DNA of 64,000 nucleotides from Zygnema circumcarinatum SAG 698-1b (Eukaryota; Plantae; Zygnematophyceae): positions 1,324,297-1,388,296 of the forward strand of contig CM074819.1 in the NCBI GenBank assembly GCA_037447605.1, written 5' to 3'. Both the position numbers and the translations under genes were made by a program. Positions 1,850 to 63,930 of this stretch are shown piece after piece. How positions within the stretch are numbered: position 1 is the stretch's first letter; the number at the start of each line of letters is the position of its first letter. Under the pieces are notes generated by a model, which was not told where the DNA came from, did no database searches, and saw only the letters and a program-made list of their open reading frames with translations.

Positions 1850-2903
1850 TGTTGTTGTACTATGTATTGTATTGTCTTCGAAGCGCTGCGTTTGTTTGTT
1901 GATGGGCGGTTCGTCAACTGGTCGGTCTGGTCCGACCGGTTTGGACTGGTCGGTCTTCCAACGGAAGAAATGATGATGAAGAAGAGGAAGAAGAAGAAGA
2001 AGCGTCACTTTGAAATCATCACTCCTGCTAGGCTAGAGTGACACCTACGAATAACTCTGTCGTGTAGCGATTCTGAAAGGACAGAGCGACACGTGGCATC
2101 GTTACGGCGCGCCATGTGTACCGGAAAGCCACCACGTGGCATAAAGTGGTCCCAGGAGGGCGGGGCTGGCGCACGCTGATTGGCCAATCTCAGTGCTTCT
2201 TTAAAGACATTTTGTCGTTAGCGAAAGCGCGCTTGGAGTGTATCTGGACCATGTCCGGTACCAACAATCATAGTTGAATGCGTTATAGAATACGTAATAT
2301 GCATATAGATTTTCATATAATTAACGGCATGTGCATAGTATGGGTTCTTGAACGTACACAGTTCCGTTCCTCGTTTTGACAAGGATAAGGGCACCTCGCG
2401 AGACATTTGGCGGAGGCCGAGGACGTCAAACATTGTCAGATCAGAAAATTCGACGGCGGGCAACGGGCAGCGGGCAGGCGGGCAGCGATCGAAATATTTG
2501 CAGCGGGTAGCCAGCGGTGAACGCATCGAAGCCGTCCGTCAAGCGATACGGAGCAATGTTTGGTGCTTGGGAACATTTTGAGCTGCCCGAACTTGGCGGA
2601 CGAAACGAAACCTGCGCACGTTTTGACGCCCTCGCGAGGGAGCCCTCCGACCGTACGGACGGTCCCGCCCGCGGGCTGCTGACATGGCGCCGAAAAGCGA
2701 TCTCGGCCGCGCGCTGCGTCCGACGTGACATCAGCGACCGCTGCAATGTCGCCACGTGGCGAGAGATCCATTGCGAATCAGCGCGAGTGACTGGGCGGCA
2801 GTTGAAGAGGGAGAGAGGGAGGGAGGGAGGGAAAGAGGGAGAGGGAGAGGGGCAGGGAGGGAGAGAGAGAGCGAGACGCGGCCTTGAGCGCAAAGTGAGG
2901 GAG

Positions 2904-5117
2904 ATGGGGCTGGTCGTTTCTTCGACGGGGCGGATGGGCCTATTGGCGGCCATGGCTGACAGCGCCGCGCTGCTGCTGCAGGAGGCGGGCGGCTTCATCG
3001 CATTCCTCGCCGATGTCGCGCTGCCGCAATTGCTTGGAGGTAGCGTTGTTCCGGGATTAAAATATGTGAGAGTGGAGACTGACCTAATTACCGAGTTGGT
3101 AGAGGAAGAGGGCGAGAGGGAGGGAGAGGGAGAGGTGGAAGGATTGGGAGAGGAAGAGCGAGAGGGCGAGGTACCGGGACCGGGAGAGGAAGAGGTAGAG
3201 GAAGAGGGAGAGGAGTCAGAGGTAGAGGAGGATGGAGAGGAAGAGGGAGAAGTAGATGGATCGGAAGAGGACGAGGTAGAGGATGAGGGAGAAGATGAGG
3301 CAGAGGTAGAGGATGGAGGAGAGGAAGAGGGAGAGGGAGTGGCCGAGGAAGAGCTATATGGCGAGAGAGAGGATGAGGCAGATGTAGAGGAGGAGGGAGA
3401 GATAGAGGGAGAGGTAGAGGGATCGGAAGAAGAACAGGTAGAGGATGAGGGAGAGGATGAGGGAGAGGTAGAGGATGGAGGAGAGGAAGAGGGAGAGGGA
3501 GAGGGACTCGGATTGGGAAGGGAGATGGGTTTGGGAGAGAGGGAGGGATTAGGACAAAGCGAGAGGCTGGCTGAGAGAGAGGCGAATGTGAGTGCGGAGG
3601 AGGAGATTGGTTCGCGTGATGCACGGGCGTGCCTCGGCGGGGTGTATTCCGCCATCTTTGGGGAGGCCAACAGTACGGATTTGGAGATTCTTTCGGCGGA
3701 GGGGCGCTTCTATTTGGGGGGGGGGCTTTACTCCGCTGTATTTGGAGAAGGCCGAGAGGAGCCTTTCTCCCTTCTCCTTCCGCAGTTCGAGTTCTTTCAC
3801 CCCTCGGAGCGATTCGACTTACTGCACAAGTTGGGCGAAGGAGGTTTCGGGAGTGTATGGGCGTGTCACGATCGTGTGACATCGGAGATAGTCGCATGCA
3901 AATGCATGAGGAAAGATGCTTTGCAATGCGTTGCCGATGTGGAGGCGTTGGAGGTGGAGGCGCTCGTTATGTGGCGCCTCCGAGACAATCCTCTCTTCGT
4001 AAAGTTAAGGCAAGCTTTTCAAGATGAGGGTAATATTTATTTTGTCATGGAGTTATGCGAGGGGGGGTCCCTCCTCGATGAAGTCACCGAATGGGGAGGG
4101 TGCTTTCCTGAATGGAAAGCATCTGAAATATTCGGTCAAATTTGCAGTGGCATGGCTGCAATGCATTCGAGAAATCTCTTACACAGAGATTTAAAACTCG
4201 AAAACATCTTAGTGAAGGATAATGGAGAAGGGGGAAAGTCCATCAAGATCGCAGACTTTGGGTTGTCGCTCGGACTCGAGCAAGGAACTGAGGTGTATGG
4301 AGGTGTTTGCGGGACACCTTTGTATATGGCGCCCGAGGTGAGGGGCGATGAGGGTTATGGAATGCCTGCGGACGTTTGGTCCGCGGGCATTCTTCTATAT
4401 CGGATGTTGGGGGGCGGCTTCCCCTCACGGGAAAGGGAACTCTTTTGTGAGCCGCAGTGGGCAAATGTATCAACCCACGCTATGTCTTTAATTTCTCGAA
4501 TGTTGGTGACCAAGGAGGAAAGGCCAACATTCGAAAGTATGTTAAATGATCGATGGCTTAATGGTTGGTTGAGGGAGGAGGACACGATTGCTTGGGTGGG
4601 AGGAGAAGACGAGGAGACCGAAGAGGCGGCAGAAATGGATCGTACGGAGGCGATAAGAGTGGCGGGAAGGAAGCGAACGGGATTCGACGATGTAGTCACG
4701 GAGAGAGCGAAGAAGCGAATGAAGGGAGGAAGAGGAGGCAAAGGGGAGAAGAGGCGAGTTAGAGAGCAAGGGAATGTCGGTGAATGGAGGGGAGAGGGAG
4801 AGGCTGCGATTCAGCTAGGTGGAGATAGAAAGAGAAAGAAATTGAAGTGGAGGGAGGAGGGAGAGGGAAGGAGAGAGAGGAAGGATGAGGAAGAAGAGGG
4901 AATGAGAGGGAAGAGGGAGCATGAGCATGCTCTGCGGGCAGAGACTGAGTGCGGCTTTTTCGTCTACATTTTGTACTTCGTCTTCTTTTTCGTGTTCTTT
5001 TGGAAGAATGTGTTGGAGTGGGCAGAGGATGCTCTCGCCACGCCCGTGTTTGCTGCCGCGCCAAGGAGGGAGAGGTTGGGGGAGAAGGGGCAAAAAGGTG
5101 GGCCAAGTCTATTCTGA
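2904..5117 (+). CDS. Intronless Ser/Thr protein kinase (CAMK/CDPK-like domain, no EF-hands) with acidic repetitive N-terminal region
   Basis: Kinase motifs are intact in one ORF (~3813-4560): LGEGGFG, VACK, HRDLKLEN, KIADFG, GTPLYMAPE, DVWSAG. Likely start is ATG 2904 (MGLVVSS). The 3' end is uncertain. Confidence 0.85.
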   Translation: MGLVVSSTGRMGLLAAMADSAALLLQEAGGFIAFLADVALPQLLGGSVVPGLKYVRVETDLITELVEEEGEREGEGEVEGLGEEEREGEVPGPGEEEVEEEGEESEVEEDGEEEGEVDGSEEDEVEDEGEDEAEVEDGGEEEGEGVAEEELYGEREDEADVEEEGEIEGEVEGSEEEQVEDEGEDEGEVEDGGEEEGEGEGLGLGREMGLGEREGLGQSERLAEREANVSAEEEIGSRDARACLGGVYSAIFGEANSTDLEILSAEGRFYLGGGLYSAVFGEGREEPFSLLLPQFEFFHPSERFDLLHKLGEGGFGSVWACHDRVTSEIVACKCMRKDALQCVADVEALEVEALVMWRLRDNPLFVKLRQAFQDEGNIYFVMELCEGGSLLDEVTEWGGCFPEWKASEIFGQICSGMAAMHSRNLLHRDLKLENILVKDNGEGGKSIKIADFGLSLGLEQGTEVYGGVCGTPLYMAPEVRGDEGYGMPADVWSAGILLYRMLGGGFPSRERELFCEPQWANVSTHAMSLISRMLVTKEERPTFESMLNDRWLNGWLREEDTIAWVGGEDEETEEAAEMDRTEAIRVAGRKRTGFDDVVTERAKKRMKGGRGGKGEKRRVREQGNVGEWRGEGEAAIQLGGDRKRKKLKWREEGEGRRERKDEEEEGMRGKREHEHALRAETECGFFVYILYFVFFFVFFWKNVLEWAEDALATPVFAAAPRRERLGEKGQKGGPSLF

Positions 5118-5689: not shown

Positions 5690-6810
5690 TAGGGGTCAGG
5701 CTAGGCTTAGGGTCTAGGGTGTAGGGTGCAGGGTCTAGGGTCTAGGCTCTAAGGTCTAAGGTCTAGGGTGTAGGGTTTACAAGTCAGGGTTCAAGGATTA
5801 GGGATTGGGATGAGGGGTTTGCGGACTTTGGGCTCAGGCTTTAGGGTTAAGGACTCAGGGTTCAGGGACCGGGGTTCAGGGTTTTGGTTGCAGGGTTTAG
5901 TGTGAAGGGTTCAGGGTTTGTAGGACTTAGGGTTCAGGGTTCCTGGTGTACGATTTGGGGTGTGGGATTCAGCGTTCAGTTGTCCTCAGGGTTCAAGGAC
6001 TAGAGATTAGAGATTAGGGTGTAAGGTTTATAATTTTGTGGGTTCAGAGTGTAGGGTTAAAGGGGGGTAGGGTTTTGGGGGGTTCAGGTTTTAGGTTTTA
6101 AAAAGCGTTCAGGCTTCAGGGTTGAGGGTTCAAGGTTCAGAGTTCAGGGTTCAGTGTTCAGGGTTTAGAAGTCAGGGTTCAGGGTTCAGGTTCTAGGATT
6201 AAGGTTCAGTGTTGAGGGGGGCTGAGAATTGAGGGTTGAAGTTTTAGGATTTGGTTAGGGTTTAGGATTCAAGGGTTAGAGTTCAAGGGGCTAGGGCTCA
6301 GGGTCCAGAATTTGGAGTTCAGGGTAGGGTTTTAGGTGTAGGGGTCAGGGTTCAGGTTTCAAGAGGTCAGGGTTTAGGGTTTAGGGTTAAGGTTCAGGGT
6401 TTCTGGGAGTTCAAGGTCTCTTTTAGGCTTAAGGGTTCATGGTTTTATGGTTCATGGTTTTTGGGTTCAGTGTTGAGGGGGGCTGAGGGTTGAGGGTTGA
6501 AGTTTTAGGGTTTGGTTAGGGTTTGGGATTCAAGGGTTAGAGTTCAAGGGGCTAGGGCTCAGGGTCCAGGGTTTGGGGTTCAGGGTAGGCTTTTAGGTGT
6601 AGGGGTTAGGGTTCAGGTTTCAAGAGATCAGGGTTTAGGGTTAAGGTTCAGGGTTTCTGGGAGTTTAAGGTCTCTTTTAGGGTTAAGCGTTCATGGTTTT
6701 ATGGTTCTTGGTTTTAGGGTTCAGGGTTTAGGGTTTAGGGTTCAGGGGGTTGAGGGTTGAGCTTTCAGGATTTAGGCTTTAGAGTACAGTTAAGGTCTCT
6801 CAGGGTTTGG
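5690..6810 (+). repeat. Interstitial degenerate telomere-like array (TTTAGGG/TTCAGGG variants)
   Basis: Many tttaggg/ttcaggg/tctaggg units, with a ~261-bp tandem duplication starting at 6203 and 6464. Confidence 0.9.
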
Positions 6811-26489: not shown

Positions 26490-28020
26490 TTGCCGGCATA
26501 CTTGCTGTTCGCCTTTTCCTTCCCCTGCTCTGCGCTCGCTCATTTGGTCCAATGTATGGCGAGACAAAGCATAAACAATATCAAATTCCCGTCGATAGAG
26601 GCAGAGCTAATTAGTACACCTACAGCCGTCAAAATTCCTTATCGAGATTGAGCCCCTGTCAAGGAGAATATGGAACCACATAGAATTCTGATAAAGAACC
26701 TGGAAAAGGAGCCCTGTAGGAATCCTGTCGAATTCATCAACTCTCACGCCGAGTCCATTTCAACAAGTAGTCTCTTTTGAAAGATAGGTTCGATTTCACG
26801 GACTAACTGAGCTAAAAATGGTCGACAGTACTCTGGCCCCAAGGCACTTATCCGAAAGCTGTAAGTCCTAGATACCATATGAAACCGAGAGTCAGTTTCC
26901 TAGACTTAAGTAAATCTCTCAAAACTGAAATGACATCCTTGAAAGACTGTGTGCGAGAAGTCACTCTCACCCATTGCCGCTGCTACAAATATGTAGGCCA
27001 TACATTGCCTCGGAAACTCTGAGACATTTCATTGCAATAATGGCCTTCTCTCACATCGCTCCCTCTGTGCCTTGACTTTATGTGATTCGAGAATCGCCAT
27101 ACCCACATCTGCGTCTCCAAACGCTCCAATTTCATGTACCTCTCAAAGTGACCTGCAACTGCTCTCCCTACATCGTGCATGCACACCAGAAGAAGTTCTT
27201 TTCCTGCTTTTCGGGTGCTGAGAAAACCTTCCTGTTCGTGCCCCTCTACAATCCTCAAAATAAACCATGTATATGTTCGCAATGCGACAGCGCAAACGCA
27301 AACAGAGCTCCATCCTTTTCTGTACAGTTGAACAGACGAGCACACGATACTTCTCCAGGAACTATTCAAATCGTCATCCTCCTCATGTACAGAAGCCGAC
27401 AGCAATTGAGAGTCTCATAACCCGTCACATCACCTGCAGACATAGTTGCAGAAGAAACTAGCCGCAGAAGCCTAGAAAAGTGAATGAACCGGTGCCCAGC
27501 GCGAGCGCAGCTACAGATGCAGCAAGTACCTTCCTTTCACTGCAGAGCTGTCAACTCAGCTGCGCAATCAGTCATGAAGATGCTCTCTCCCTTTCATTAA
27601 GAATCTCAATTGCAACATTTCCATGAAATCCCTCCCAGTAGTGCCTCCACACCCACCTTACAGCAGCTTCCGATGAAGCGCCTTCTCACCACTCCTCGCC
27701 CACATTGCCTCATTGCCACGCCCTAGCCAGCCATAACCAGTACTTGTCAGCTCCTCACAGACGGACATCCGTGCATCACAAGCAGCATGCAGAATTCTGG
27801 AGAAAACTGCAATTGCATCGAAAGGCATGGTGAACCCAAATCACTTCTTCAATTCAGCTCATATCAATGCAAACCACTTTCAGATGTACTTCCTTCCTTG
27901 CATATGTTCAAACATTCATCCAAAGAAGAGATAAGTGGGGCATCTTCCCTTTCATCACTCATGATAAAAACAAGCTTCATCTCCGAGAAAAAAGCCCCAT
28001 TCAATATTTTTTTCTACCTG
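26490..28020 (-). pseudogene. Possible decayed coding sequence, unidentified
   Basis: Balanced-composition block with long reading stretches on the - strand broken by several stops; no recognisable motif. Confidence 0.2.
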
Positions 28021-28076
28021 TTCCTTTCCACCCTTCATCTCTGCTACCGTCCTTTTGCATCAAGCGGCCGCCGATC

Positions 28077-28320
28077 AATCCCCGTTCCATGTTCCGAATT
28101 CCCCTCCAGTTCCACATTTCCCCGTCCAAATGCCACATAAAATCGTTCCCTCCAACACAATCTCCTCTCTATGTTCCTAATCACCCGTCAGTTGCAAAGT
28201 TCCCCGTAAAACTGCCACATAGACCCGTTTCCTTCCCTCCGAATCCCCGTTCCATGTTCCAGATCCCTAGCCAGTTTCTAAATTCCCCGTCCAGCTGTCA
28301 CATAGAACGCTTCCCTCCCT
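28077..28320. repeat. Three diverged ~82-bp tandem units upstream of PGLP
   Basis: aatccccgttccatgttcc at 28077 and 28242, with a degenerate middle copy at ~28160. Confidence 0.7.
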
Positions 28321-28937
28321 GTCCTACGTGCCCCCTCCCCCCGTTTCGCCCGCCCCCAAAAGACCCTCCCCCTCCGCGCGCCACGTGGCGCCGTACCATT
28401 TTAGCGGATCAGCCTCGCACGAACGGCCCCCTCTCATTGCACCACGTGTCGCGCCCTCCGAAGACCGACATTTTTAACTGTAACGGAACTGTAACGGAGA
28501 ATCCCGTAGTACATGGAACCTTGTAGGGAAAGGGCCCCTTCGCCTCGGGCTTTTGGCGAGGTTCATTCTGTTCGTACGATCGCGAATCCCGGGGTCGCAG
28601 CCAATGGGAGGGTGGCCGTACACGTGCGGGGTGGCGCCGAGAGTGGCTTTTGGCTGAGGCGCGCTGCCGAGCCTGGGCCAGACCAGCAAATTGGGCCGAG
28701 ACTGGTCCGGACCTGCGCCAGCCACAACCAGTTTCTTGAAGCGGAAAAGCGCTCGAGGACGTGGTTGGCAGCGTGCTACATATTGGCGGCGGCAGGGAGG
28801 GATAGGGAGAAAAGGACTCGGAGAAGGAGCGAGAAGGAAAGGGAGGGAGGAGAGGGAGAGGAAGTAGAGGGGGAGGGAGGGAGGAGAAGAGGGAGAGGAA
28901 GGAGAGGGAGGAGGGTTGTGAGGTTTGAGTAGGAAGG

Positions 28938-31900
28938 ATGTCGGCGTCAGCAGCAATGAAGGCGATGGGGAGCTCGCTGAGCACCGCGCAATTGCAGATT
29001 TTACCGGCAGGCTTGAAGACGCCATGCTCTGCAAAAAGGCGAGTACTGGATGGTGCAGGAGGTGGTGGTAGTGAGTAGGGAGGCAGAGGGAGGGATAGCG
29101 GGAGCATGCTGCTGTTGGTGAATCGTGGCGTGTACAATTCTGCATTGCAGTGGTTTAAGTGCAGGGGGGGCCGTAGCTATAGCCGAAGGCAAGGGTAGAC
29201 GGGTGAGGTGTCTCTGTTTATTGCAAGTAAAGTATTGGTAGTAGGTGATTGTATTCATTCCTAAACAGTGAGTAGAGTATGTTCGACAGGTGTATTGTCC
29301 GCTTCTTTATTTTAGAAGGCGGTTCATTTCCTTACTCTCATTTGCCTTGGTTTTAGTGTAATCACCTATTTGCTCTGGAGGTTATGGAAGGTGTATTGTT
29401 ATGACTTCACGGGTAAATTTATTTTCTCCTCTTTGATATAGACACGTAGTTACGCGTGTGTATTCAAGTAACATCGACTCACAGAGGGAATTTCCAGTCA
29501 TCCACTTTATGAAGTTTTGGATAATTTTTGATAGATTTGGAGAGTTTTTCTATTTTATAGATTGCGTCTTGTTTCCTTGTTGACCAACGCCCTAACATTT
29601 TTGCTTGAACTGGCTACAGAGATTTTGCCCCCTTCGTGGGCATGAGGCGCACAGCGCCTGCAATTGTTAGCAGTGCCAAGCCCGTTGGTGCAGAGGCGCC
29701 TCGCAAAGCAGCAACCATTTCGGCGTGGGTCACCAACGGAAGCATAACCACAAGTACGGATATGCCTTCGTCTTTCAACAATCCTGTTTGCTTGCATAGC
29801 TGGCTTACACAGTTTGTTTCTTTATGTGCAGTAAGATTGCCATCGCTAATCTTTACTTAGCGTGTGGTTTATTTTTGCAGATACCCAGGCTCCTTTCCTG
29901 AAGAACCCTGCAGGTCTTATTGACCTTGTGCAGACATTTGTCTTGGACTGCGATGGTATGCATGCAACTCCCTCTTTTGCAAGTGAATTTCAGCACAAGG
30001 ATTCATGGCAACTCTCACCTGTTCCGCTTGTCATTGAATGACACTGCCAATTTATTCCAATCTAAAGTAAGATAAAATTGGCCCTTTGCTTGGCCTACCT
30101 GATCAATGCTTGCAGCGAGTGTTGGAGATGGCCCTGTTTGGTTTGTGACGTGATTTTTTTTCTAAAAACTGCAGGTGTGATCTGGAAGGGAGACAAGCTC
30201 ATCGAGGGTGTTGGACAGACATTGGATGAGCTGCGTGCGAAGGTGAAATAATGTTCATAATATTACTTTTTTTCGTTGCTATCGGAAGCTTGTTTTCCCT
30301 TCCTTAGAAGATGGCTTGATTAACCTTATTCCATGCATGGACTGTGCTTTGGAAATCTCGATCTCTCCGAAATGACCAAGAAATGAGGTCATTGGGGTCT
30401 TTCTGACCTAACCGACTGACTATTGATTGACGAACCTTTCAAAGCTTTTCGTCTGATGCAGGGAAAGCGTCTTGTGTTTGTTACCAATAACTCGACCAAG
30501 TCGCGCAAGGACTACGCGAAGAAGTTTGCCAGCCTCGGGCTGCAAGTCTCTCCAGTAAGTCATTATTGAGCGATGTGTTGGATTCCTCTGGCCTTTGAAG
30601 CCTTTATGATTCTGTATTATACTCAATTTTTCTGGTGAGATTGTCTTCAGATCAGATGATACATTTATAGCTTGCATGTAACTAATGCAGTTTGTTCTTG
30701 CTTGTCACATATTAAGAGGCTCTTCTTCTTGCTTTGTAGAATAGTGAAGCTCCACACTCGAGCTTATGCAGATGCCTTTTTGTTGTACAGGAGGAAATCT
30801 TTGCCTCATCATTTGCGGCTGCAGCGTATCTGAAGTCTATCAACTTTCCAAGCTCTAAGACAGTAAGTTGGACTATTCACTACCTCACTTTCCTTGAATT
30901 ATTGTGTTACGGGAATCCCTGGAGCTGTATGCCGGTTAGTTTACCTCGTTAATCATGCCACGTGGATGATCATGTTTACTGACATGTTTCCATGATGAAA
31001 TTGGAATGCAGGTTTACGTCATTGGAGAGAAGGGCATTCAAGATGAACTGGATGCCGTTGGGATCAAGAATTTTGGTGGACCTGTGAGTTTTCGACTTTG
31101 CCGCTTGTGCCGCTTTGTGGTGCCTGTAAAAAGTTGCTACGTGTTCTTAGCGGATGTGAACCCATCCTTTCGTCGAAGGAGTGACTTTAGAACATGGGCT
31201 AATGGGACATGTGCTATTGTATTGTGCTTGATATGCAGGAAGATGCCGACAAGAGCATCGAGCTTGCAAGTGGAAGCTATCTTAAACATGACAGCGGGGT
31301 ACGTTGATGCAAATCAGCATCCACCTCATGAGAGAGGGAGAGAGAGTTTTCTGGATGTATGCTTGGTATATCTTCTGGATTGTCCAAGATATTCTCGTTT
31401 CTTGGTTGCTGATAAGAATGCAGAAGTTTTATCTGAAGTTTGACTGACGTTGACTTCATGGCTGTGCAGGTTGGAGCTGTGGTGGTGGGATTCGATCGCA
31501 ACATTAATTACTACAAGATTCAGTATGTCTGCTGCCACTGGAAACCATAGTCTTGCTGTAATTGGATGGATCAAATTGAATGCTGTTGTAGGTACATGTC
31601 TTGATCGTGTTCAGTTTCTTGAGAGCTCGTGAGCATGTAGGACAAGCATTTACGGATGGGAGTAAGTTAAGATGATAATTGTTGAATGGTCATCGCTTTG
31701 ACTATAATATGATGAAGTTGAAAGAAAGTTGGTGTGATGATGATGATGCTGATGACGTTTTTCGTATGGTGCAGGTACGGAAGCCTTTGCCTGCGGGAAA
31801 ACAGCGGCTGTCTGTTCATTGCAACAAACACTGATGCAGTGACTCACCTCACTGATGCTCAAGAATGGGCAGGTATGTCTCTGAATGTCCTGGATTCTGC

Positions 31901-34900
31901 CTTAGCTCCATAACCTGACTGAACAGCTTGTGGTTGACAAAATATTGAAGTTTGAAGACTGCTCATTTTTGCATTTATGTTCTGAATTACAGGAGGAGGC
32001 TCAATGGTGGGCGCGCTGAGGGGGAGCACTCGAAAGGAACCTCAAGTTGTTGGAAAGCCATCTACATTCATGCTGGACTACCTTTCCAAGAAGTACGCTT
32101 TTGGAACCATATCCCCTCACCCCTATCAGTACATTTTTTGGCAATTTCCTATGTCAGACTTAGGCGAGGGGCATGATTAAGAATGTGACAGGCTGAGGAT
32201 TGGCAAGTGCGGATCGTTCTAGATATTATTATCTTGTTGGTATTGATTGGCTGTCAGCTGCCATCGTTTTTTTTTTTCCTGCTTTTGTTGACTGCCGGTG
32301 GTTCTGACCTGCAGGTTCGGTATCTCTAAATCCGAGATCTGCATTGTGGGAGATCGTCTCGATACAGACATCCTTTTTGGCCAGAGAGGAGGCACCAAGA
32401 CTCTCCTTGTGCTCTCAGGTAAATTCCACCCACATACATTCCCCACATGCTCCTCTTTCATGGTTGACGCTATTTCGACACAATCAATGGTGATGTTCCA
32501 GCAAGCACACTCCTACTTCGCTGAAACCCTCATGTTTACGTAGTTTCGATATCTCTGGGTCTATTCTGCAGGTGTTACATCATTGGCAGATCTGCAATCC
32601 TCAGATGTTCAGCCTGACTACTACACCGACAAGCTCAGTGATCTGAGAACATCTCCAACCTATGCGGAAGATGCCCCAACTCCCACAGCTCTTCCCAAGA
32701 GAGTAACAACTGGACGTTCCCTTATCCGGGGCAGAGGCCGCGGTAGAGGTCTTGCCCGTCCTTCAGTCGCTCAGTCATATGCTCCCTCATCCCCTGCTCC
32801 TTCATTCTTTGACTCAGTAACTGTGCCAGCAGCACCTGTTTCTGAGTCAGAGTCATACCTCTCCGATGAGGATACCCCTCTTGAAACACGCACTCCCGCT
32901 ACGGCTCGCACAGTTCGCCCCCGAGGTGGGATCCGTGGGAGAGGCCGCTCCCGTAGTCCGACCCCTCGCAGTGTTGTGAGATCAGTTTCACCTTCACCGG
33001 CGGAGGAAGAGCCCCTCTCTTTCTGGGACGCAGAGCCAGTTTCAGTGCCAACATCATCTCCCTCTCGCCCCCGTACTCCCTCTCCCGTCAGACGCGGCCT
33101 TGCTGGCAGAGGCCGAGGCAGGAGTGCAGCACCTCGAGCAGCATCTCGCTCCCTGACCCCTTCAAGGGTTGAGCCAGTAAGCTATGAAGTTGTGGACGAG
33201 CCTACGCCTGTGGTAGTAGTCAGGTCCAAGACCCCTACTGTGCGCGCAAGAGGCGGTCTTCGTGGCCGAGGACGCTCTCGCTCTCCCGCTCCTCGCAGCG
33301 TTTCAAGGTCAGTGGAAGAAGAGCCCCTCTCTCTTTGGGAATCGGAGCCAGTTTCAGTGCAAACACCTTCTCCCTCCCGCCCCCGCATTCCCTCCCCTGT
33401 GAGACGCGGCCTTGCTGGCAGAGGCCGAGGCAGGAGTGTAGCACCTCGAGGAGTGTCTCGCTCCGTGACCCCTTCAAGGGCAGAGCCTGTGAGCTATGAT
33501 GAGAGTGTGGAAGAGCCTACACCTGTGGTAGTGGTAAGGTCCAAGGCCCCCATTGCACGAGGAAGAGGCGGTCTTCGCGGGAGAGGACGCGCCCGCACCC
33601 CCACTCCTCGCAGTGTTTCAAGGTCAGAGGAAGAAGAGCCCCTCCCTCTCTGGGAATCCGAGCCAGTCTCAGTGCCCACATCTTCTCCCTCCCGCCCCCG
33701 TACTCCCTCCCCCGTCAGACGTGGACTTGCTGGTAGGGGCAGAGGCAGGAGTGTAGCACCTCGAGCAGTGTCTCGCTCCGTGACCCCTTCAAGGGTTGAG
33801 CCAGTAAGCTATGAAGTGGTGGACGAGCCTACGCCTGAGGTAGTGGTCAGGTCCAAGACTCCAATTGTGCGAGGAAGAGGTGGTCTTCGTGGGCGAGGAC
33901 GCTCCCGCTCTCCCGCTCCTCGGAGTGTTTCCAGGTCAGTTGAAGAAGAGCCCGTCTCTCTTTGGGAATCGGAGCCAGTTTCAGTGCCTACACCTTCTCC
34001 CTCCCGCCCCCGCACTCCCTCCCCTGTGAGACGCGGCCTTGCTGGCAGAGGCCGAGGCAGGAGTGCAGCACCTCGAGCTGCTTCTCGCTCCCTGACCCCT
34101 TCAAGGGTTGAGCCAGTAAGCTATGATGAGAATGTGGACGAGCCTACGCCTGAGGTAGTGGTTAGGTCCAAGACTCCTATTGTGCGAGGAAGAGGAGGTC
34201 TTCGTGGCCGAGGACGCTCCCGCTCTCCTGCTCCTCGCAGTGTTTCACGGTCAGTGGAAGCAGAGCCCCTCTCTTTCTGGGAATCAGAGCCAGTCTCAGT
34301 TCCAACCTTGGCTCCCTCCCGCTCCCGTACTCCCTCCCCTGTGAGACGTGGCCTTGCTGGTAGGGGCCGAGGCAGGAGTGTAGCACCTCGAGCAGCGTCT
34401 CGCTCCCTGACCCCTTCAAGGGCAGAGCCTGTAATTTATGATGTGGAAGAGCCTACGCCTGTGGTAGTAGCCAGGTCCAAGTCTCCGGTTGTGCGCGGAA
34501 GAGGCGGTCCTCGCGGGCGGGGACGTTCCCGCACTCCCACTCCTCCTCGGAGTGTTTCAAGGTCAGTGGAAGAGGAGCCCCTTTCTTTTTGGGAAGTAGA
34601 GCCAGTCCCAGTTCCAACCTCGACTCCCTCCCCTACCAGGGGTGGCTCTGCGAGTGAGAAGAGTGTGAGAGGTGGCCTGCGAGGCCGAGGGAGAGGACGA
34701 GCGTCGGCGGCTAGAGCTGCCCGCTCTGTGAGTGCTCCCCCATTGAGCGAGTCCCCTGAGCCTGTCGAGTACACTTCCTACTATGAAGCCCCTGTCTACA
34801 GTCCCCCCCGCCAGGAAATTCGAACCCCTCCCCCCACCTCCAATGCTCGTGGGAAGACCGTCAGGGGAAGAGGAAGGTCCGTCCGGCTTTTCCGAGTGTC

Positions 34901-35015
34901 CTCCACTGCGAACGTTCTTGTGGCGAACCGCAGCGGTGGGGGGGGACCTTCAGTTGTCCTCCGGTCATCTAGAAGCCCTTCACCCAGGAGGTCTCCTGTG
35001 ACCATCCGGAAGTAG
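28938..35015 (+). CDS. PGLP1: Chloroplast 2-phosphoglycolate phosphatase (HAD IIA) with ~790-aa repetitive C-terminal extension; 13 exons, ~1,160 aa
   Basis: Transit-peptide-like exons at 28938-29038 (GC donor) and 29620-29753. HAD motifs [67 protein letters not shown] and LVLSGVT. The last exon (from 32572) reads [12 protein letters not shown] straight into the repeats up to TAG at 35013-35015. Confidence 0.93.
32910..34640 (+). repeat. Coding tandem repeat, alternating 312/315-bp (104/105-aa) units
   Basis: The GAG-CCC (EP) anchor of [12 protein letters not shown] recurs at 33009, 33321, 33636, 33948, 34263 and 34575. Confidence 0.95.
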
Positions 35016-36429
35016 AGGGAGGCGGGGGAGAGAGGAAGGGAGAGAGAATGGTGGCAGGTAGAGAGAGATGGAGAGGGAGAAAGATACAGCTATGTGTATA
35101 CAGCAGTTAGAGATTGTTGGACCCTGCACTAACTGTGCAATGTCTTTAAGTTTTTTTAACGATTTTTAGTTTTGGGTGTCTTAGCTTTGTAGGGCTGAAA
35201 GGGATGTTGAAACTGTTATTATGAGAACATCAAGAATCCAAAGCCATGTGTTTGTGTGTTTCTGTTGGATGCGATAAGGTTATGATGATTTTGGAAAACC
35301 AAACAAGAAAATCATTACCATCACTTACATTAAATTTGCCAAATCTCATTTTTTATTGCCTGCTGCTGCGTACATTCAGTCCGATCTGAAGCATTCCTCT
35401 ACTTTATAGCGGCTATCTAGGTATATTTTTCGTAGGCTACGGGGGTAGTTGGGGTCATTTTCTCCTATAGATACTCTTGCGTTAGAAGTCAGCGACGATG
35501 CTCAGAGACTACTTCCTCCTGAATACAACGACGTGCCTTAAGGACGGCTTTCAGTGAAGTAGAGACGGCATGCAGGGATACCTTGGAGGTGACGTTACAC
35601 AATACCTTCAATCTCTGCCATCACTGCGTGCTCACATAGCAGAATGAGGCGGCTTGAATCTAATGTCTAGTGTCATCTAATATCAGGCAGCTGTAGTTGG
35701 GCGTTGGACCTGTTGCTCCCCAAAACAAAGCCAATGGAAAGTCGACTTTCTGAAAGATTTTCAGTGTTCTTGTTGGTTGTTTTCATTTGCAGCAATTACT
35801 TTTGTTAATATTTTTCGTGAGCAATTGGCAGTTTGACTCTGGAGATGTATGGCGAAGGTGACCGACCAGTCCCAGGCTGCTGCTTTTATTGCGCTTTCGG
35901 AAGCCCTTGCAGTGCAAAACCCCATGGACTATCTATCGATGGAATTTAATCCAATTCTCCTCCTGAGACTGAGCCTTCGTTTGTAGACGAGGTAAAATCA
36001 TGAAAAAGGAGTAACTAACTGTCGACTGTTTTTTCACCTAACTTTGAATCAACACTTCGGGTGTGTTCGAAAAATGTCTTGGAAGCTCTCACTGCAATAG
36101 TATCATCTGCCTCTGTGACCCTCAACAAACTCTCCATATTTCACTGGGATAAACCAACCATACACAGTCGCAGATAACTCCCCTCAATTTGGAAACCCCC
36201 TCCACTGTTATCAACGAGGAACTCAAAAGCCTTCCTGAAAACTAACTTGCCAATGCACTGCCTGCTATTGGATCAAAGCAGGGCAGTAGCAGAACATGCA
36301 ATCAAAGCAGCTATTGCGTACGCTGTTAGACGTTCCTTACTTTGCAAGCACTACATTTAAAAAATACTCGAAAAGGACGTGACTAAAAAATAAAAAATGG
36401 GTCCCAACAAAGAGGGAGGTTCCCTTGTA

Positions 36430-37803
36430 CTAATGGTACACCTGTTGTGTGGGGAGCTCTCCCCCTAAGTCTTGGTAGAGAGTCACTGACTCCTTCGGTA
36501 TTCTCTGTAATAAACTCTTCAGAACAGGAATGGTTTCATTGTCTGCAAACCGGAGGGACCACATGCGCCTATCTTTCAACGGATGCTGCTCCTCCATGTA
36601 CCCAGTTTTGGAGTCTATCCATATCATCTTCGTGCTTGAATGATAGACCCAAATGTTGACCACTCGTTCCATAATGAAGCACCAACACAAGCGGCTGTTA
36701 TACTGAAAGCCACGGAACTTGCGAAAGCTCAAAGGACACCTTTCCACATCCCCATGCAGCCGCCATAACGACTCGAGCGTCACAAAAAATGCACGGGCAA
36801 ATGCGATAAATTTGCGAAAATGGTCTCTATGCATTACCCAGTATGAGCAGTAGGAGTACTCTCGTTCAATGGTTGGCAAAGGTGGAAGCCAGCTCCGGCG
36901 GTATTTCGTGGCATGATTCTCATCGTCCAACTTTGATTGCGTACCAAACAGTGCATGAAATGCCGCCGAGTAGACTATATGGCAGCTGCCGTGCTCCTTC
37001 CTGCACTCTCTATACATGTGGCTGCGCTTCCACGTGGACCAATAATAGAACACCCTCGTGTCCAATTTCCCTCCCTCCTCTTTCGCCTTCACCACCTCCG
37101 CTCGCATGTGGGACATCAGCCTTTTTAAAGCAGTGGGTCTCAGATGAAACCCTTTCTTTTTCGCTCTCCAGCTCTGAAACCCTAAAAATGGCACCTTTCC
37201 ATGAATCTCATCCAAGTGCTTGTCGAGTGTGAACATGGCTCCATACTCGCAGAGCAGCCCTTGATATGTGAGGTCTTTAAGGACAGGCAAGAGCTCAGGA
37301 GCATCCACATCATGGCTGCCATTTCGGACCATTCCAGGGTATACACACATACCGCGATATGGAGGTAAAAGATGGACGTGGCTCCATGCTTGCCGGCTGT
37401 AGTACAGCTCGTAAAGGACAAGCACAGGCTCTTGGGAAGAATCTTCAGAAAAGAGCTCGTCGATTCGCTCTGAGTCCTCCTCAAAAGTGACTGACTTTGC
37501 TCTCCTTTTCCCCCTACTTCTTTTAAGCCTGCGCAGCCTGGAACTCTTTCCTACATCCTGCGCCAGAATAGAGACTTCTCCAAGGTTTCTGGCGACATTT
37601 CTACTCAAGTTCCCCCTTGTAGACAATGGGGTTTTCCCATATCCCCTACCAGAATTTTCTACCTCACCCTCTACATTCTTTATCTCCCAAACCTGCGATT
37701 TCTTCATTGGCAGGTCTGCTGCATGGACGACCGGTCCAAAAAAGATACAAAATAAAACTCCCTGCGTTTTTCGTACAATGGACTTAGTCCACCCCATTTT
37801 CAT
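36430..37803 (-). CDS. Intronless protein homologous to the C-terminal domain of plant At5g04480 (BUP)/At4g01210-type glycosyltransferases
   Basis: Motifs YELY..AWSHVH..YRG, DVDA..LPVL, LLCEYGAMF, FLGFQSWRA, LPPLP, WVM..F..F, CWCFIMERVVNIWVYHS and GYMEEQHPL. First ATG 37803 is followed by a signal/anchor-like stretch. Confidence 0.8.
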   Translation of the reverse strand: MKMGWTKSIVRKTQGVLFCIFFGPVVHAADLPMKKSQVWEIKNVEGEVENSGRGYGKTPLSTRGNLSRNVARNLGEVSILAQDVGKSSRLRRLKRSRGKRRAKSVTFEEDSERIDELFSEDSSQEPVLVLYELYYSRQAWSHVHLLPPYRGMCVYPGMVRNGSHDVDAPELLPVLKDLTYQGLLCEYGAMFTLDKHLDEIHGKVPFLGFQSWRAKKKGFHLRPTALKRLMSHMRAEVVKAKEEGGKLDTRVFYYWSTWKRSHMYRECRKEHGSCHIVYSAAFHALFGTQSKLDDENHATKYRRSWLPPLPTIEREYSYCSYWVMHRDHFRKFIAFARAFFVTLESLWRLHGDVERCPLSFRKFRGFQYNSRLCWCFIMERVVNIWVYHSSTKMIWIDSKTGYMEEQHPLKDRRMWSLRFADNETIPVLKSLLQRIPKESVTLYQDLGGELPTQQVYH

Positions 37804-38224
37804 CCGTCTCTTTTTAGAAAACGAGTCACTGTGAAGAGAAAGGCCAGCTGGCCTACCCCCTAAAAACGTCCATCCGATCAAAAGCGTTCCCGGTAGGCCC
37901 TACATTGCCACTTGCTGCTTACGTTCAGGCTTTACAGATATCTAGAACCTTAAGAATTGTTCTCAAATCCTCTTCTTCCGATGAAGGTCATTGAATCTGA
38001 CGAGCAGACTGACGCTGAAGAGTCGAACATGCCAAAATTACCGAGCTAATCTTACCCTAAATTGCTTCCTTCGACTATCTAGGTTCAATGGAGTTCCCAT
38101 CCTCCGGTGCTCTGCTGGTTTCACCTGTTCCATGCGGTGTTCCAGAACTGCGCCTGCTTCTGTGGCTCCATGCGGTAGCTGCTTCGTAACCATTTCCAGG
38201 GGCAAACTTGTCTTACAGCCGGAA

Positions 38225-43884: not shown

Positions 43885-45846
43885 ATGGCTGCCAAAGCTC
43901 CCCTCCTCCCAAACCCTAAAACTCCCACAACCTCTGCAAGTGCTGAGCTGCGCCCTCCTCGCTCCGTCTCTGTTCCTTCTCCTGCAACGCCGCCATGGCA
44001 ACCGCCCTCCCTGCACGTGGCTCGTGCAGGAGGCCACATGACAGAGCTTCTCCACCTTCCAAGCGAGCGGCCCGAGCTCCATGTTCTGGTTATTCCAGGA
44101 AATCCGGGAGTCGTTCCTTTCTACAGCGAATATGTAGCAGACCTCTTCTCTCAGCTCAATGGGCGCGCTTCAGTGACAGCTGTCAGCCATGTAGGGCATA
44201 CAGAAAAGGAGTGGGTGAAGGGAGGGCTCTTTTCTCTCGCAGAACAGATTGATCATAAGGTGAAGTATCTAGACGAGCAGTTCGATTCTGGGAAACTGTC
44301 AGCCATGGATAGTAGCTCAGTTCAGGGGAAGGAGGACAATGGAGGGGAGAGAGAGGAGGGAGGGAGGCAAGAAGGGTCTGGAAAGACGCTGCCATTGGTA
44401 TTGATTGGTCATTCTATTGGAGCACACATTGCCATGGAGGTTCTTCGGAAGTTCGGACCTGGCAGAGTGAAGCATGTTATCGGAGTCTATCCCTTTGTGT
44501 CGCTGAATGAGAGGTCCATATGGCAGAAAGTGCTCAACTGGGCTTCACGTATCACCGTACTTGGTGTATTTCTATCCGGGGTCTCAGAGCTTCTTGGAAA
44601 ATTGCCAAGACAAGTTTCAAGTCTTCTTGTTCGAGGCTCCATGGGCGGAGGTTGGAGCGCGAGCGCTGTGGAAGTGATGCGACGCTATGTGCTGCAGGTA
44701 CATTTCACGACAACATGTTCTTACTTATCTCTGATCAATCGAATTGTACTAGCAGGGAAGATCAGGCCCTTCAGGGTTAATTGAATCTTTAAAATCGTTT
44801 TTTCTCCTCCGTCGAACATTGTGGAGCAAACAAGTCCGTTATCTTTGAAGAAGTGCATTTCCTCCAAGTCATCTTGACATTCTTTGGTTATGCATGTCTT
44901 GTGTGCAGTACGGTGTAACGCGTAACTTCGGCTTTATGGGATCAACGGAATTTGACACAGTAATGTTCTACACCTGTTCACAGCCCTCCACTTCGTTAAA
45001 ATACCTCGCAAGAACATCTCTACATTTTTTATTAACACTTCTTCTTTTCAGGTCCTTCGCGAAAGTTCCCCGTGATGATTTTGTCCATGCCCATTTGATG
45101 GCATCGCCATCGTGAGATCAATGCCACATCTCCCTCGTCTATGGGCTTAACGGAGAAGTAGCAATGACTTTATTATATATGATATGATGACTGTATGATA
45201 ACTTGGCTACTTTTTTGCGCAAGGAAGCTTATACTGTTCTTATTTCGAGTTTTGTGTGATTTTTTTCTGAGTCTGAACCCCCTTTACTGTTTCCTGGATG
45301 GGAATGCAGCTGAAGAGTGTACCCGATTGGGATTTCCTCCGAGCGAACCAGTCTCGACTCTCCTTCTTGTTCGGAGTGGATGATCATTGGGGGCCCCTTC
45401 ATCTCAAAGACGAGGTCTGCACTACCTCGCTTTCTTTCCCAAGTCTTTCAAAAAACACAATGTTTCAGTCACGCCCATGGTGACTTCAACCAATCACATT
45501 TTTGGTAGCACAAATTTTCAGGCCAACCCTTCAAAACAATTGAAGTCAGCGGGACTTTTTAGGGTTTGTTTTTGCTTCTTTCTCCTTACCATTCTCTGTC
45601 TCACCATACCTTCACCGATACACGGAACATCGACCTCGAAGGCCACTCCATGGAGCCTTGCCGTTGAGTTCATTTTTAAGTTTTCTTGTGCGGGCGGAGC
45701 AGATGGTGAAGGAGGTGCCTGGGATGGAAGTGGCGGTGGAGAGGGAGGGCCACCTGCATGCCTTCTGCTGCACGCGGGAAGGCTCCTCCTGGGTGGCCCG
45801 GCAGTGCGCGCGAATGATTCTCTCAAAGCGCATTCTCCGACCTTGA
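43885..45846 (+). CDS. LDAH: Lipid droplet-associated hydrolase (alpha/beta hydrolase), 4 exons
   Basis: VIPGNPGVVPFY, SHVGH, SLAEQIDHK, nucleophile elbow GHSIG, FGVDDHWGP and HAFC. Confidence 0.85.
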
Positions 45847-63046: not shown

Positions 63047-63930
63047 GCATGACTTGTCCACATGAAGAGAGTCGTACACAGTGCTTGAGCCGCAGTGAGA
63101 CGAGCGCGAGGGTCCTTCTTAAGGAGCCGCTTCACAAAGTCCTTTGCGGCGGAGCTGATGCCCGGCCATGGCTTCTCTTTGAAGTCCGGCTTCTTCTTCA
63201 GAACCTGAAAGTTGCAGTATGGGGCCCCATGTTTGCTCCACATCAATGGACTCATCACACTTCTGACTGAATTAGCATGTGAAGGTTTGTGGGTGGAGAG
63301 TACTACAACCACATGGGTGCATATCAGACTCAAAACCCAAACACTTGTTCCAGAAAACGTTTAGATTGACAGAAACAAGCACTACTGTGCAAAGCATATA
63401 AATGATTTTCATGAAGTTGCATAAGAACGATGAAACAGACAAACAATCCCATACACCATCCAGAATCCTTGCAACCTTTCTGTATCGTAACAACTACCCA
63501 ACTAATCAGTTTCCTCCCGCAATTCGTGATCATTTCTCCAGTACATTCTCACTAACTTTTCAGTACTTTCCCATATGCCTTCCCTTTGTCCATTCCCAAA
63601 GCCCACCTCATTGAAGATTCCTGCCTCTGTCTTATCCCAGAAGGGGCGCCCCCCGTAATCAGTTTTCTCCCGCAATTCTTCACCATTTCTCCAGTACATT
63701 CTCACTATCATTTCAGTACTTTCCCATATGCCTTCCCTTTGCCCATTCCCAAAGCCCACCTCATTGAAGATTCCGGCCTCTGTCTTATCCCAGAAGGGTC
63801 TCCTCCCGCAGAGGAGGATGTAGGTGATGACTCCAACGCTCCATACATCAGACTCAGGGCCGGACTTCCTCTTCAGCACCTCCGGAGCGACATAATATGC
63901 GGAGCCCACCACATCAGTAAACCTCTTTCC
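60494..63930 (-). CDS. Calcium-dependent protein kinase, CPK16/18/28 clade (3' part; 5' exons beyond the window)
   Basis: [49 protein letters not shown], junction [15 protein letters not shown] and four EF-hands (DVNRDG, DSNRDG, DTDNDG, DLDGDG). Confidence 0.95.
62993..63047. repeat. (CAA)n microsatellite
   Basis: Tandem aac run in a CDPK intron. Confidence 0.95.
63503..63808 (-). repeat. 153-bp tandem duplication spanning a CDPK exon-intron boundary
   Basis: 63503-63655 and 63656-63808 align; both contain GAG|GTGGGC donors (63758-9 and 63605-6). Confidence 0.92.

Follow-up and report, generated by a model that had tools for sequence, protein, structure and literature searches.

We found that a gene for phosphoglycolate phosphatase, PGLP1, lying in a 64,000-nt stretch of the Zygnema circumcarinatum SAG 698-1b genome (contig CM074819.1, positions 1,324,297 to 1,388,296 of the forward strand, assembly GCA_037447605.1; this whole stretch is hereafter the window), joins the enzyme to a long, multivalent, disordered repeat tail. 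The enzyme-plus-tail design itself is already known; what appears new here is its combination with PGLP. Codon-level comparison of the repeats indicates that the tail is a selected protein sequence, and its conserved candidate sticker appears to be an arginine-glycine (RG) block. The best single explanation is that the multivalent, cationic, block-charged tail would partition a putatively plastid-targeted, catalytically intact PGLP1 into the Rubisco condensate of the pyrenoid, a proposal whose chances we regard as evenly balanced.

The gene occupies positions 28938–35015 of the window on the + strand and comprises 13 exons, with the ATG at 28938 and the stop codon at 35013–35015. Four public sequencing runs were compared over 28980–34979; X7, X8 and X20, which come from three separate studies and are labelled '?' or 'RNA?', lack the introns, which are present in the DNA run X1. 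All 12 intron joints were recovered in X7 and X8 and 11 of the 12 in X20, whose contig stops short of exon 1. Intron 1 is of the GC-AG type, the remaining introns being GT-AG. The frame spliced from these joints is open throughout for 1157 amino acids (aa) with a single stop, and the last exon alone holds an open frame of 810 aa. Contigs of all three runs bridge exons 12 and 13 up to 33119 and so cover roughly the first 160 codons of the tail; one X20 contig carries exon 11 in addition to this bridge, and two contigs extend 723–744 nt past 34979, beyond the stop codon. A mis-predicted tail or an early end of the transcript is thus ruled out by RNA contigs that join catalytic exons to the tail. 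An earlier interpretation of this locus from its letters (the sequence-only reading) had proposed that the frame runs on past the PGLP core, which these contigs bear out, and had named transcripts across 32572–35015 as the check; no splice joint or early end was seen in exon 13 up to 34979, in contig-level data from which rare forms are dropped and in which the array is never spanned whole. The number of repeat units is that of the assembly, as none of the contigs reaches from one end of the array to the other. Low-depth contigs within intron 1 (29039–29619) in X7, X8 and X20 suggest some retention or pre-mRNA. A non-coding RNA was also considered and rejected, there being no Rfam match within 27000–38000.

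The first 82 residues (S+T 22%, A 21%, nine R/K, two D/E) form a leader that, judged by composition only, is transit-peptide-like in length and make-up. The core that follows (aa 83–368, its end marked by an 11-residue stretch) is 73–76% identical to land-plant and Closterium PGLP1 and 68% to a PGLP2-like protein. Residues D101, D103, T134, K297, D322, D325, D327 and the cap histidine H267 each match 123–124 of 124 homologs, HAD motifs I–IV (DxD, T, K, GDxxxxD) are all present, as the sequence-only reading had claimed, and Pfam matches fall on exons 5 and 12. From these residues the core is a PGLP1 (HAD-IIA) with a PGLP1-type cap loop and an intact active site. Single exons or natural proteins were the queries in database searches; the joined model served only for frame, alignment and tree checks. 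Core identity, catalytic residues and a transit-peptide-like leader are thus shared with plant PGLP1 (Arabidopsis, Marchantia, Closterium, Spirogloea), from which the window protein differs by its long tail and a longer branch in the tree (0.21 vs. a median of 0.088). More than 110 other PGLP1s lack a tail and end about 19 aa past the terminal PD[FY][YF] motif, where the window protein continues for about 800 aa; three Populus entries with long tails were excluded, being fusions with a PF04142 domain.

The tail is rich in R (17%), S (16%), P (15%), V (12%), G (9%) and E (7%), with a net charge of +75 and an isoelectric point of 11.8; it contains 53 SP/TP sites, eight RGG and many RS/SP dipeptides. 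It holds 14 GRGR blocks at successive spacings of 69, 56, 53, 51, 54, 51, 53, 51, 54, 51, 52, 56 and 61 aa, i.e., 51–56 aa within the array and up to 69 aa outside it. Alternating with these blocks are acidic-aromatic patches, six of the form EEEP(L/V)(S/P)(F/L)W and five of the form EPV(S/I)Y(E/D). A recount returned the same numbers of blocks and patches, and a tail of the same approximate length (~790 aa), as first reported. The centre of the tail is a tandem array of 315 bp × 5.2 copies (33002–34632, 85% matches, score 2264), in each unit of which a W-acidic patch is followed by an RG block, a Y-acidic patch and a second RG block. Charge along the tail is correspondingly periodic, with an autocorrelation of +0.67 for lag 52 and of −0.72 for lag 26, and a two-unit AlphaFold model from single sequence gave a predicted local distance difference test score (pLDDT) of about 50 and no secondary structure. 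As a query, the tail found no match among 5.8 billion proteins, in Pfam or in two metagenome scans, and the ESM Atlas returned nothing for it or for the homologous tail described below. Pyrenoid linkers are lineage-specific (PMC13655443, PMC11570498), and such an absence of sequence homologs would be expected of one.

Between the five full units, synonymous divergence (dS) is 0.22–0.39 and nonsynonymous divergence (dN) 0.04–0.11, giving dN/dS of 0.12–0.37 with a mean of 0.24. Variable columns fall on 44 third codon positions vs. 16 first and 16 second ones, all indels are multiples of three (gaps of 3 or 6 nt), and the RG cores, W and Y are invariant while their codons vary; the four other reading frames examined contain 5–25 stops. 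By these measures together the tail is a selected protein sequence under purifying selection and not a read-through satellite. A neutral satellite is disfavored by the dN/dS values and the in-frame indels, and a translated GA microsatellite as the origin of the tail is excluded by the mixed codons within the GRGR blocks. The notion of a dispensable tail, i.e., a tolerated read-through extension grown by unequal crossing-over, of little function and possibly trimmed after import, could draw on the presence of the tail in only two known sequences, its absence from the other PGLP1s and a five-fold expansion confined to one lineage, but it is highly improbable given this selective signature and the collinear blocks retained by a homolog with just 63% core identity.

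This homolog, P0154 (600 aa; Logan SRR8128904/5, with identical coding sequence in both runs, L001:111-1913), comes from another species and was the only long protein found with a profile of exon 13, as lead sequence, and natural PGLPs. It consists of a PGLP core and a 229-aa tail with few acidic residues and a net charge of +24. With the array removed, the window tail is collinear with that of P0154 (80 identities in 206 columns; z 7.8 global, 9.4 local), the alignment score being reached in no six-residue block shuffle out of 2000 and in two twelve-residue ones out of 2000, and the two tails have in common three RG blocks, one acidic patch and one aromatic patch. Composition-adjusted BLASTP of tail against tail was not significant (E 12), as expected for low-complexity sequence; the claim of homology rests on the collinear alignment, the block shuffles and the shared position behind a PGLP core. 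Similarity between the leaders was no better than background. Seven rare core residues are common to the window protein and P0154, compared with four for the next best match of the window protein. The two are sisters in an LG+G4 tree (support 89/78) but are not grouped under LG+C20, hence a common origin of the tailed proteins is likely, not firm.

In P0154 the motif III lysine is replaced by glutamate, six further invariant residues near the site are changed, and 43 of 182 near-invariant columns are altered vs. 15 of 182 in the window protein. Judged by HAD chemistry, P0154 is probably a pseudo-enzyme; its structure model shows a HAD core fold and a disordered tail (tail pLDDT <50). As the catalytic lysine has been lost from a tailed protein, the job of the tail may not need catalysis, and the tail may outlast it. 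The P0154 tail would represent an older, three-block form. Its RG blocks are retained and a W motif is missing, which points to the RG block as the conserved element. The sequence-only reading had taken the W-acidic motif for the key sticker and simple removal of 2-phosphoglycolate at its source for the purpose; P0154 speaks against both.

The condensate proposal would work as follows. Once the protein has entered the chloroplast and shed its leader, the RG blocks would act as weak stickers on acidic Rubisco surfaces, and would also contact the E/W/Y patches of the tail itself through salt bridges and cation-pi interactions. HAD-IIA cores form dimers, and such pairing would double the valence to about 28. 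2-Phosphoglycolate would then be hydrolysed next to Rubisco, with the tail also cross-linking the matrix; one duplicate would have become a mainly structural protein, its catalytic activity gone but its tail retained, and phosphorylation at SP/TP sites could permit release. We favor this reading because the substrate of PGLP is made by Rubisco as a toxic by-product, because the RG spacing matches that of EPYC1 and CsLinker, because Chlorella possesses enzymes with appended Rubisco-binding repeats, one of them probably inactive, and because a predicted phosphoglycolate phosphatase, CPLD2, resides in the Chlamydomonas matrix.

Several known systems bear on the comparison. Pyrenoids are present in the host, as the proposal presupposes: Zygnema circumcarinatum bears them (PMC11096116), and Zygnema has large pyrenoids and shows physiological signs of a CO2-concentrating mechanism. 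Sticker spacings quoted for EPYC1 and CsLinker are 52 and 48 residues (PMC13655443, PMC11570498), and like these linkers, SUPA1 and PYCO1, the window tail is disordered and basic with repeated stickers about 50 aa apart, so that the linker-like character first ascribed to it stands; PYCO1 also has two alternating sticker types (PMC13655443, PMC11570498). The pyrenoid-linker search FLIPPer uses repeats spaced 20–120 residues (PMC11570498); the tail is disordered (the whole protein having a folded 290-aa core) and falls within this spacing, and structured repeat stickers were not found in it. Chlorella RHOP is an enzyme with appended Rubisco-binding repeats and PMTT carries a probably inactive enzyme domain; together with PMST they combine a folded domain with a disordered multi-motif region (10.64898/2026.07.17.739135). 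Their motifs match the known linker of their own host, whereas the window tail has no such known linker. Hornwort RbcS-STAR is likewise a streptophyte C-terminal extension on a protein of carbon metabolism (PMC13655443), yet it is a short coiled coil on Rubisco itself, whereas here a photorespiratory enzyme bears a long disordered repeat. CPLD2, a predicted phosphoglycolate phosphatase, is enriched in the Chlamydomonas pyrenoid matrix, and the passage on it describes no comparable RG repeat tail (10.1101/2022.05.31.493820). Linkers have been listed for Chlamydomonas, Chlorella, a diatom, a chlorarachniophyte (a candidate) and a hornwort, with none for streptophyte algae (PMC13655443). Our literature search, whose coverage mostly excludes subscription papers, found neither a streptophyte-algal linker nor a PGLP with a repeat tail, in agreement with the initial impression that such a fusion is undescribed, and no PGLP was found in the supplements of Feng et al.

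A number of observations weigh against the condensate proposal. The tail contains no match to the W[R/K]xx-hydrophobic Rubisco-binding motif of Chlamydomonas or to the PYCO1-type sticker KWSP[R/Q]. EPYC1, CsLinker and SUPA1 have helical stickers; none is predicted in the two-unit model or the P0154 tail model, single-sequence models being weak evidence. Known linkers also have 5–6 stickers vs. 14 blocks here, share no motif with the window tail, and differ from it in that the latter is fused to an intact enzyme. As the motif and helix comparisons failed, we do not file the tail under EPYC1-, CsLinker- or PYCO1-type linkers. The tail motif occurs in no other protein of the 64-kb window. Tail-less PGLP1 was sampled in the Zygnematophyceae Closterium (pyrenoid-bearing), Netrium and Spirogloea, although tailed paralogs outside the sample could still exist in these algae. 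CPLD2 belongs to a HAD subfamily different from that of the PGLP1 core. Finally, GRG/RGG together with RS/SP composition is a classic signature of nucleic-acid-binding disordered regions.

This last point leads to the view that the tail binds plastid nucleic acid, its RG blocks gripping nucleoid DNA or stromal RNA and holding the enzyme there, either to clear the phosphoglycolate that is set free when oxidised DNA ends are repaired, or to serve as a structural component of nucleoids or RNA granules. We consider it unlikely. The tail does carry clustered RG/RGG repeats in a disordered region, and its GRGR cores, RGG, RS and SP dipeptides, strong positive charge and high isoelectric point resemble RG/RGG and RS-rich binders; moreover, the RG block and not the aromatic patch is what P0154 keeps, and P0154 is catalytically degenerate. 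Yet, the window protein differs from such binders by its regular acidic-aromatic patches, plastid-type leader, enzyme head and lack of RRM or AT-hook (the canonical AT-hook core RGRP has no match in the protein). Acidic-aromatic patches that recur unchanged at regular intervals would be expected to repel nucleic acid and point to protein partners, and the core is that of the Rubisco-linked plant PGLP1. The surroundings of the Chlamydomonas pyrenoid are enriched in RNA-binding proteins, which favors a nucleic-acid tether but also means that it need not exclude the condensate reading.

Rubisco-independent clustering would instead involve self-condensation of the tail as a block polyampholyte, or its electrostatic anchoring to thylakoid or phosphorylated-starch surfaces, and would concentrate, store or regulate PGLP, e.g., under desiccation. 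Such a role fits the strict alternation of charge, the invariance of both arginine and aromatic residues, the abundant SP/TP sites and the lack of a known Rubisco-binding motif. We nevertheless give it a low probability, as it leaves unexplained why PGLP in particular bears the tail, and the P0154 tail has few acidic residues and only three blocks.

A stronger form of the condensate proposal holds that the tailed PGLP family is itself a main cross-linker of Rubisco in the pyrenoid matrix of Zygnema, with non-helical RG stickers on a dimeric enzyme, one duplicate acting as enzyme-linker and another decayed to a pure scaffold. This we regard as doubtful; if true, it would be the first linker of a streptophyte alga.

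For the question of how pyrenoids are built in the closest algal relatives of land plants, this gene supplies an expressed and selected candidate sticker, the RG block, from a streptophyte alga. Should the tail bind Rubisco, it would add a sticker chemistry not described before, from the lineage that is sister to land plants, relevant to condensate engineering in crops, and would tie removal of 2-phosphoglycolate physically to its source. Should it bind nucleoids, a photorespiratory enzyme would prove to be connected, unexpectedly, with plastid DNA. Under either reading, the degenerate P0154 offers a natural enzyme-to-scaffold comparison.

Table 1. Coordinates of the PGLP1 gene and of its repeat tail in the window.
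Feature	Position	Strand	Evidence
Exon 1, coding part; aa 1-34, start of leader, GC donor at end	28938..29038	+	581-nt skip in two runs; frame
Intron 1, GC-AG	29039..29619	+	RNA joints, frame check
Exon 2; aa 34-79, remainder of leader	29620..29753	+	RNA joints, frame check
Exon 3; HAD motif I DxD (D101 29946-29948, D103 29952-29954)	29881..29955	+	RNA joints, homolog alignment
Exon 4	30175..30242	+	RNA joints, frame check
Exon 5; HAD motif II T134; Pfam Hydrolase_6, E 2.5e-8	30462..30554	+	RNA joints, Pfam, homologs
Exon 6	30791..30862	+	RNA joints, frame check
Exon 7	31012..31083	+	RNA joints, frame check
Exon 8	31239..31298	+	RNA joints, frame check
Exon 9	31470..31522	+	RNA joints, frame check
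Exon 10; cap loop with H267; at most 91% identity to PGLP matches	31775..31872	+	RNA joints, homologs
Exon 11; HAD motif III lysine K297 at 32055-32057	31993..32092	+	RNA joints, homologs
Exon 12; HAD motif IV D322, D325, D327; Pfam Hydrolase_like, E 3.6e-10	32315..32418	+	RNA joints, Pfam
Exon 13, coding part; end of core (to 32645), entire tail, stop	32572..35015	+	Contigs of three runs
Disordered tail, 789 aa	32646..35012	+	Frame, composition, structure model
First RG block, kept in P0154	32727..32765	+	Alignment
Five units of 104-105 aa (33003-33314, 33315-33629, 33630-33941, 33942-34256, 34257-34568)	33003..34568	+	Tandem-repeat analysis, alignment
Partial sixth unit, including last W-acidic patch	34569..34632	+	Tandem-repeat analysis
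RG block of 11 residues, 11/11 the same in P0154	34671..34703	+	Alignment
Last RG block (RGK.V..RGRGR.VRL), kept in P0154	34848..34889	+	Alignment
Probable 3' untranslated region, extent inferred	35016..35720	+	Two contigs overrunning 34979

As for the surroundings of the gene, an 82-bp unit is repeated three times (28076–28320, 72% matches), some 620 nt before the PGLP1 start codon, and an uninterrupted open reading frame of 483 aa without Pfam match (36430–37881, − strand) is convergent with the gene. Further away, the window contains an uninterrupted 866-aa open reading frame (2517–5117, + strand) in which a protein kinase domain (PF00069, E 2e-56) lies behind a long tract rich in Glu and Gly, degenerate 7-bp repeats that are plant-telomere-like and internal to the window (5708–6747), and MFS transporter exons (PF07690; 13377–16124, − strand) that resemble a nitrate transporter NRT2. 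A lipid-droplet-associated hydrolase domain (PF10230) is encoded at 43885–44784 on the + strand, and a 153-bp near-perfect duplication (94%) at 63503–63798 copies part of a CDPK-like kinase exon together with its donor site.

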